DNA from: Bugula neritina
Lineage: Eukaryota > Animalia > Bryozoa
Assembly: GCA_964035545.1 (NCBI GenBank)
Contig: OZ037769.1
Span: 4,941,929 to 5,005,928 of the forward strand
Length of the DNA stretch: 64,000 nt
Direction: 5' to 3'
Shown here: positions 40,301 through 43,300 of the stretch, piece by piece
Layout: every line of letters begins with the position of its first letter
Numbering within the stretch: the first letter of the stretch is position 1
The notes under the pieces: generated by a model
The model's input: only the letters and a program-made list of their open reading frames with translations
Databases searched by the model: none
What the model was told of the DNA's origin: nothing
Translations under genes and position numbers: made by a program

Positions 40301-43300
40301 GTGAGCATTTTATAAACTTTGGTTAAACTTCACTGAAAATAGCGCACACAAGGCGATTTCCAGATGCAAAGCAATAATTTAAGCAGATCACATGATGGCA
40401 GACAACTCTAGTCTGTATTTAGCTATCCACAAAGTTTATATCAGCACACAGCATATTCCTATAAGCACACTGATCGAGTTGGAAAAGTTTCCTAGCAGCA
40501 ACTCTGGTATTCTTCTAAAACCAGTGTGTTAGAATATTGGTAACTTACCAATAGTAGTATATTCAAGTCTGAACCCATTGTGGGCCAGAGTTTCATCAGA
40601 CTGGAAGCGAATATACAACGAGCTGCCTGTAGAATTGATTCTAGGTGGTAGTACCTGTCCACATGACCTCTGCAGTAGGTCAGAGGTAGCTGTTGGTCCA
40701 TCTCTTATCTAGTAAGATTTACCACTAATGTCAGCATTTATATTACATATCATTTGTATCTTTAAAAACGCTAATTTTCTAAAAATAAAAAATCAGCTTC
40801 CAACTGTTACAACTCTACAAAATGCTGAATTTTTAATCAATCTGACGTTAAAACAAAACATGTGACATTTTACGATACTTATAGTCGGGTAGTCACATGA
40901 TTATGGAGAAAAAAACTATTAATAGAATACAGCTTGTCTAGTTAGAATGCAAAATTATATCAAGTACAAAAAGGTACCTTGGCTTTATCTTATTTTATTT
41001 GATTGAAACACAAACGGGACACATATACAAATAGGATGTGGATAGCTTGGTATGAGTTAGACAGAGTTGAGCAGAGCAAAGCAGTTATAGGCTACCACCA
41101 AAAGAATATACCTTAACCTAGTTTATAACAAACCAACATGCTTAGCTTTTTATTCAAATCTTGGCATAAAAATCACTCTTTAAAAAGATGTCATAATTCC
41201 ACCATCTTAAAAATGACAATCGCTGGACTTTATGCAGCCGTACATAACAGAAAAAGCTGGCAAATAGAATGATGGGCTTGAACACAGGAGACTGGCAACC
41301 CAGCCTGATAACAAAACAGATGTGTGAAACTGCCCAACATAGACTTGGTACTTAGTTTACGAAGGCAGGTAGACTAAGTAACAAGTACTAAGTACATAGG
41401 GGTGGGCAGGTTTGATGTAACGCCCGACATACCTCCACATTGTCATATTGACACTCAGAATGGTCTTCCACATCAAAGTGAGAGAAAGCCGTGGTAAGAA
41501 TGTTACCAGGTGAGGTGTGGATAATCCAGGAGCAATCTCTGTCATGAGGATAACCGTTGGGAAAGTTGGGACTTTCAATAACACCGTGGAAGCTAGTTAG
41601 GTTCTGCTCTTGGCATACTAAAGAACGGGTGATTATACTTGACAGACAAGCAAAGTAAGAGAGAAACCAACCCAATCCATAGTAGAGGCTAATTTGGTTT
41701 AGTGTGACTTACAAAGTGATGGAAAAGATCACCTAAAATCTCTATTTAGTTGATGAAAGGTAGTTCAACTGGTTTCAGAATTAAACTAAAGAATGTAATT
41801 CAATCACAGCAATGTTTTGTTAATTTGACGGAAACAGGTGAAATTTTTGAAAGCAGCAGATTTTAGATACTTTAAACCAAATTGGTCTCTACTATTTACA
41901 CATTGAAAGAGCGGGGGGGGGGGTAGCATGGGGGTAGGGGAGAGCTATGGAGCTATACAGCTGGTGGGACATACAGACCTCCAAGAAATCTCTGCGGCAA
42001 GTTGAGGAAGTGTTTTGGATCGCAAAGTGTGAGAAAGAAACGGCGATAATGTTACCAAGTGGCGCGTTGATTATCCAAGAACAGTTACGATTGTGGGGGT
42101 AATTGCTAGGAAAGTTGGGACTCTCAACAACCCCCGAACTAGTGTTCAACATGATGTTCTGGCAAACTGAAAGTTACATGCAAGAACAGGTAATAACAAC
42201 ATGGCGGCAAATGCAATTGTAACCAATAACAATGAGTAAATATAAAACACTGGCTGTACATACACGTGTAACTAGTATCAATAAATTATTAGCATTCACA
42301 GACTTGCATTTTATTTAGCATTTATTTAGTTTAAGCTGTACTCACATAAGAATAACTTAATTCAAAAATTAAAAGCAGTGACACAAGCAAAGTTAGTTGA
42401 TGTGTAAGACATGGGCATGTTGGTATGTAAGAATAATAAGTAATAATTAAAACGAGATAACTATACAAAAACACTGTGTTTCTTGTAGGACACAGAATAG
42501 TTTAACACCACTAAGTGGCTGGTTTGTACGATGCTCAAGACTCTGTCTTATAAATTCATGATTGTATCAGTCTAACGAAAAGATACACAACTCCAATAAT
42601 TGATCAAACCTATATTTTCAAGAGTTTTAACAATGTCACGATTTTGGGTTTTCTATAGCACAAAGAAGATGCAAATGTGTTAACAGACAGTGTTAATCAA
42701 GTCCAGGGGCTCTAGACAATAGATATACATATTATTGACTATTTATTCATAGGCATAAGTTCTAGTTTGTACAACCGCAGTGTTTTGGCATTTTATTCTA
42801 CCTACAAATTTAGATATCTTATGATGTGAGATTAGATACTTAGCCACAGGTTCTGTGTCACACCTACCTGCATGATAAACAGCGTGGAAGCCACCACCCC
42901 CTACTGAAGTGTCTGTTCTGAACTTTACAGTCATCACATTCCCAGTAGATCTGACTGGTTGCGGAAGGGTACTACCGCAGAGTTTGGCCAATGAGGTTCC
43001 AGTGTGAAGTCCATCTATAGCCTAATCAACCACGGAATATAATCATTCACTCAACAAGCTGAGAAAAACTCATTTTTCCATCAAAAAATTATTTAAACAA
43101 AAATAAAACTGTTTGGGTTACTAAAGTCACAGTGAATTTAAATTATATTTAAATTATAATAATCAGTGAGCTGTGTTGAATTCAAAATGCAAAATGATTT
43201 GTCTTCTGGAGTCTTTACTAGGTATACATGAAATATATGTGTAGCTTACTAATTCAATGCTATACTAATACTCACTGATCTTTCTAGATAGAAACACTAA

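Follow-up and report, generated by a model that had tools for sequence, protein, structure and literature searches.

Does the cubilin gene of the bryozoan Bugula neritina produce two versions of its eighth CUB domain (CUB8) by splicing either of two tandem exons into its message, and what would such a swap change in a receptor whose mammalian counterpart has intrinsic factor-B12 as a ligand? An earlier note, made from the letters of a 64,000 nt stretch of the genome (the window, to which all coordinates refer unless stated otherwise), had proposed that two neighbouring exons, here called A and B, are mutually exclusive and exchange the ligand and Ca2+ face of CUB8.

Structure of the cubilin gene and the exon pair

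The gene and the features around the exon pair are as follows, in the order of transcription after the first line:

15445-63290, minus strand: cubilin gene, with the coiled-coil end, the EGF region and 27 CUB domains; the 3′ end is approximate
42868-43021, minus strand: upstream exon, constitutive, C-half of CUB7, phase 0 to 1; its donor serves both A and B in RNA
41979-42166, minus strand: exon A, alternative, N-half of CUB8, 188 nt, phase 1 to 0
41618-41978, minus strand: intron between A and B, 361 nt, with 16 AG dinucleotides and a C-rich tract just 3′ of the A donor
41433-41617, minus strand: exon B, alternative, N-half of CUB8, 185 nt, phase 1 to 0
41353-41426, minus strand: C-rich tract 3′ of the B donor, a candidate splicing-regulatory element
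40549-40708, minus strand: C-half exon of CUB8, constitutive; common acceptor for A and B in RNA

The gene was classified as cubilin based on its order of domains, with 27 CUB domains after the EGF repeats, and its colinearity with named cubilins. Its 5′ end lies past position 64000, with the N-terminal amnionless-binding region outside the window. It is colinear, exon by exon, with residues 132-3768 of the RefSeq cubilin of the bryozoan Watersipora subatra (P0231), which has 27 CUB domains, a number that the earlier note had also reached by counting the pair once. Almost all intron positions and phases are common to the gene and P0231, and the identity, mostly 55-85%, is higher than that to any other animal found. 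Exons A and B are the only exons which map to one and the same residue stretch of P0231 (1373-1437), and since residues 1255-1500 of P0231 align to CUB7-8 of the structure 3kq4_B, the pair encodes the N-half of CUB8, as originally assigned.

Exons A and B are adjacent homologous exons of one phase covering one protein region, the arrangement of mutually exclusive tandem duplicates, and their coordinates, lengths and phases were exactly as first described. Both are stop-free with AG and GT at their flanks, and they are identical in 31/61 amino acids (51%) with synonymous sites saturated, which bears out the description of the copies as about half identical with many synonymous differences. The 216 Mb genome has one copy of the pair. 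Elsewhere (G000:C4:10.33-10.36 Mb), near-identical CUB N-half matches form a dense tandem array of at least 14 within 28 kb.

A single C-half exon (40549-40708), the site of the third acidic residue of the Ca2+ motif, follows the pair and none lies between A and B, in agreement with the earlier reading; runs of N are absent from the window, and hence no gap conceals an extra C-half exon. As the length of the exons is not divisible by three, joint inclusion shifts the frame and leads to a stop 18 nt into B, while skipping of both exons leads to a stop 26 nt into the C-half exon. The frameshifts that had been predicted for both forms are thus present, and the two stops are at the same positions in Watersipora.

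Exons A and B are spliced one or the other

Assembled contigs from four runs (X1, X2, X4 and X9) of four studies were aligned to positions 39900-44000. Two of the four runs were taken as RNA by guess, and their contigs are spliced at GT-AG introns. Assembled contigs drop rare forms and their depth is a rough measure, with tissue regulation outside their reach. Each of the two exons was found spliced to the same flanks, by four exclusive joints: upstream exon to A (42868 to 42166, in X2 and X4), upstream exon to B (42868 to 41617, in X2, X4 and X9), A to the C-half exon (41979 to 40708, in X1 and X4, and in X2 as a loose end matching the start of the C-half exon), and B to the C-half exon (41433 to 40708, in X1, X2, X4 and X9). 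Exon A was seen in three studies and exon B in four. Neither a joint between A and B (41979 to 41617) nor a message skipping both was detected among the contigs of the four runs, where rare forms could be missed. The depths of A and B together roughly equal that of the flanks, with 25.8 + 40.5 vs 56.4 in X4, about 2500 + 2300 vs 4029 in X2 and 3.1 + 4.5 vs 5.8 in X1, and the two exons are included at similar levels in these bulk samples. The joints present and the joint absent are those predicted for mutually exclusive splicing, which we regard as close to certain for this pair.

The competing reading holds that both exons are constitutive through a GT 4 nt downstream of the A donor, which would restore the frame in both species, or that one exon is a dead copy or an assembly artefact. 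The RNA speaks against it, as the donor used is 41979, A is joined straight to the C-half exon in three runs and the A-B joint is absent, with no use of the downstream GT in the contigs of the four runs. This GT also scores poorly (4.1 here and -4.4 in Watersipora, with medians near 8), and both exons are conserved and single-copy. A dead exon, use of the downstream donor and a hidden gap had been set beforehand as refuting the proposal, and none of the three was found; the competing reading is largely refuted, and we give it next to no weight.

Contigs of X1 are identical to the reference, and those of X2, X4 and X9 diverge from it by about 2-7% in exons and roughly 10% in introns. We therefore read the latter three as a second lineage or cryptic species, which likewise uses both exons.

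Conservation and age of the duplication

Both exons are kept in Watersipora subatra, as the proposal expected of a relative, in the same order and with the same phases and frameshift stops:

L001:45841-46034: Watersipora orthologue of A, 73% identical to A
L001:46777-46961: Watersipora orthologue of B, 70% identical to B

The Watersipora RefSeq protein contains exon A only and omits B, an annotation which is corrected here. Between the species, the A and B orthologue pairs have pN values of 0.18-0.22 vs pS values of 0.74-0.75, with dS near saturation, which indicates purifying selection on both exons as judged from this one relative. In a phylogenetic tree, the two A exons form a clade (99/98), as do the two B exons (99/97), and A and B may be sisters (p-AU 0.44). 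Identity to outgroups is 52-54% for A and 54-56% for B.

A profile search found one CUB8 N-half exon each in Tubulanus, Owenia, Paralvinella, Lamellibrachia, Saccostrea and Branchiostoma, with no second such exon in these six non-bryozoan genomes (none of them vertebrate), and no CUB8 swap was present in the RefSeq isoform pairs of nine molluscs, echinoderms and amphioxus. The bryozoans compared are two species, a fragment search with the Watersipora protein having yielded no further bryozoan, and the Lingula locus stops short of CUB8. Within this sampling, the tandem duplication predates the split of B. neritina and Watersipora, and most likely took place in the bryozoan or lophophorate line, and the exon swap at CUB8 appears to be restricted to bryozoans.

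The pair may also have an older origin with later losses, as suggested by the A-like loops of Solemya and of the annelid-like transcript P0269, which groups weakly with A (92/84). Convergence is the preferred reading of these loops, since Solemya lacks the constitutive Asp of the C-half, P0269 clusters with an annelid, and a single such exon was found in each of three annelid genomes. The CUB8 of Solemya velum (P0219 residues 1387-1499) has lost the Glu and both Asp residues of the Ca2+ motif, and the Glu is also missing from CUB8 of several other animals.

Other candidate alternative exons

A second candidate alternative pair was noted in the coiled coil before EGF1:

63249-63290, minus strand: first exon of the second candidate pair, 42 nt
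63115-63174, minus strand: second exon of the second candidate pair, 60 nt, Arg-rich

These exons are separated by 74 nt, and their counterparts in Watersipora (L001:15682-15723 and 15784-15843) by 60 nt, with the RefSeq model skipping the 42-nt exon. In RefSeq isoforms of Mercenaria, Mytilus, Crassostrea, Haliotis and Babylonia, an Arg-rich and a non-basic segment are swapped at this place, and the coiled-coil pair could be an older switch. In Watersipora, CUB8 and CUB9 are further separated by a linker exon of 42 nt (L001:48564-48605); the RNA here goes from CUB8 straight to CUB9, and 40142-40548 has no clear counterpart of this exon. A low-similarity, linker-like exon candidate in CUB5 (45523-45609, minus strand) matches an insertion exon of Watersipora by position only.

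The Ca2+ site of CUB8

We take Glu1328, Asp1336 and Asp1373 to be the Ca2+ ligands of CUB8, as reportedly assigned in the 2010 structure paper and in keeping with the Tyr-Glu-Asp-Asp motif of Ca2+-binding CUB domains (PMC6829435). Residues are numbered as in human cubilin (chain position + 931), which was checked against four Asn sites in PMC9485058. All four bryozoan exons retain the motif Tyr and Asp1336; Asp1373 belongs to the C-half exon that follows A and B alike. Glu1328 is found in 41/47 other cubilins and in three of the bryozoan exons (Watersipora A and the B exon of either species), the fourth, A of B. neritina, having Gln at this position. The form with exon B hence contains all four motif residues, as does the form with Watersipora A.

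The motifs FAIQ..CRRD in A and FDVE..CQYD in B are as the earlier note had read them, and the argument that it built on them, of a Ca2+ face altered by Glu to Gln, Tyr to Arg and loss of acidic residues, was overstated. The change of Glu to Gln is real in this species but is not a general feature of A, and is specific to this species' lineage since Watersipora A keeps the Glu. The change of Tyr to Arg is likewise present as a residue change but does not affect the Ca2+ motif, the position being Thr1335 in human CUB8, Tyr in just 24/47 cubilins and variable across animals. The loss of acidic residues in A vs B holds here (3 vs 10) but not in Watersipora (6 vs 5). As all three contrasts fail in Watersipora or elsewhere, a Ca2+ switch is not the conserved feature of the pair. 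Judged from the residues, B and Watersipora A appear to have an intact Ca2+ site, and that of A of B. neritina is probably weakened.

The strongest version of the Ca2+ argument makes the splice choice an on/off switch, with B binding Ca2+ and cargo, and A binding neither. The Gln, the N-glycan sequon directly after it and the acidic counts of this species are in line with such a switch, but the complete motif of Watersipora A, its acidic count matching that of B, and the location of the changed Tyr outside the motif restrict it to one lineage at most, and we consider it quite improbable.

Ligand loop, glycan sequons and fold

In both A exons (this species and Watersipora), the loop is 1-3 residues longer, the His two residues past the Glu is lost, an Arg follows the Cys, no aromatic residue precedes the Asp, and an N-glycan sequon is aligned to mammalian N1285. 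Exon B has an ancestral-type loop (Glu-x-His, Cys-x-Tyr-Asp), and the sequon at the N1285 position is absent in both B exons, with B of B. neritina having one two residues earlier. The extra sequon after the Gln brings A of this species to three N-glycan sequons in all. Mammalian CUB8 binds intrinsic factor at its Ca2+ site (PMC6283879), and in mammals the glycan at N1285 lowers albumin binding (PMC9485058). A structural model of Watersipora CUB8-A (pLDDT 94.9, rmsd 1.1 Å to 3kq4_B) predicts a confident CUB domain, with the lowest confidence in the A-specific loop. We infer that the A and B forms differ at ligand-facing loops and in glycan shielding, and the A form of B. neritina may show weaker Ca2+-dependent binding too.

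How exclusion may be enforced

Steric or U2/U12 exclusion would be indicated by a branch point <50 nt from the upstream donor or by U12 sites, and neither was found: there are no U12 donors, and the branch-point match of Watersipora B is at -21. The A-B intron contains many AG dinucleotides (16 in 361 nt here; 36 in 742 nt in Watersipora), which argues against a steric block through a distant branch point. Comparison of the two species showed no common docking or selector stem and no conserved intron block, and folding of the A-B intron here gave z = -1.8. The B acceptor is the third weakest in the gene in both species. Among 64 introns here, the two C-richest tracts are those 3′ of the A and B donors (ranks 1 and 2), and the ranks in Watersipora are 9 and 6 of 72, a ranking made post hoc. 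The weak acceptor and the C-rich tracts, with no steric or U12 signal and no stem common to the two species, would favour regulation by splicing factors combined with frameshift decay; exon choice is probably set by such factors, and frameshifted messages are probably decayed.

Possible function of the two forms

The best explanation overall, which we consider somewhat more probable than not, is a splice-controlled change of CUB8 cargo specificity. In this reading, the CUB8 N-half exon was duplicated in tandem before the split of B. neritina and Watersipora, giving the copies that are joined to shared flanks one at a time. B kept the ancestral loop, and A gained the longer loop lacking the His and the aromatic residue, with its sequon at the N1285 position. 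Both forms would adopt a normal CUB fold, so giving the cubilin-amnionless receptor two forms with different CUB8 docking surfaces, which probably take up different protein cargo, or take it up at different affinity. Weak splice sites and C-rich intron tracts read by splicing factors would set the choice, and nonsense-mediated decay would clear double-inclusion and double-skip messages. For a functional cargo difference between the forms as such, our confidence is equally somewhat above even.

Alternatively, A and B may be real alternatives that are near-equivalent in function, with purifying selection acting since each is part of a large share of the messages. Species with a single exon show much variation in the CUB8 loop, so the A-B differences may reflect tolerance and not selection, and the similar inclusion levels and similar outgroup identities of the two exons are also compatible with equivalence. 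However, A-specific and B-specific features were kept while synonymous sites became saturated, and redundant duplicates would be expected to vanish over such a time. We think near-equivalence unlikely, and retain the change of cargo specificity as the preferred reading.

A bolder extension is that the cargo of bryozoan cubilin-amnionless is switched by tissue or life stage via the CUB8 splice, with the A form here being Ca2+-independent or silent, and glycan-shielded. This is doubtful; if true, one gene would supply two receptors, one Ca2+-dependent and the other Ca2+-independent (or silent). The genome contains two separate amnionless-like loci (G000:C3:13.975-13.978 Mb and G000:C2:4.366-4.369 Mb), each of which may encode a membrane anchor for cubilin. 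A search of the genome for the intrinsic-factor-like family PF01122 gave no match and is uninformative, as control searches were equally blank.

Comparison with known systems

Substitution of tandem duplicated exons is a well-known splicing mode (PMC9741552, PMC5740500), which the pair resembles in having adjacent homologous exons of the same phase with one per message, and in being old, conserved and of a length not divisible by three. Neither of these two human surveys mentions CUBN in its main text, and the abalone paper PMC5368703 counts cubilin isoforms and does not, in its available part, describe such exons. Our literature search found no report of mutually exclusive exons in cubilin and no bryozoan cubilin paper, consistent with the earlier impression that the swap is undescribed for this gene. 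The novelty is an exon swap in cubilin at a functionally well-mapped site, the splicing mode itself being known.

Tandem duplicated alternative exons do occur within cubilin in RefSeq isoforms of Branchiostoma, but they affect an EGF exon (L009:23241-23399 and 24098-24229) and the C-half of a late CUB domain (L009:67318-67455 and 68195-68338) instead of CUB8, suggesting an independent origin. The closest functional reference is CUB5-8 of mammalian cubilin (PDB 3KQ4; PMC6283879; PMC9485058), to which the bryozoan domain corresponds in its position as CUB8, its fold and its motif positions, with the sequon of A at N1285. Few ligands of invertebrate cubilins are known, and A and B are natural alternatives at CUB8 in a receptor that is the same elsewhere, thus allowing a clean comparison of cargo choice at a domain which binds intrinsic factor and albumin in mammals. 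A short cubilin isoform of the human intestine ends after CUB8 through a cryptic exon (PMC12926548), and is similar in that alternative splicing acts at CUB8 and tunes the receptor by tissue, but differs in being a truncation with no swap of homologous exons. Splicing at CUB8 hence diversifies cubilin both in humans, by truncation, and in bryozoans, by exon swap.
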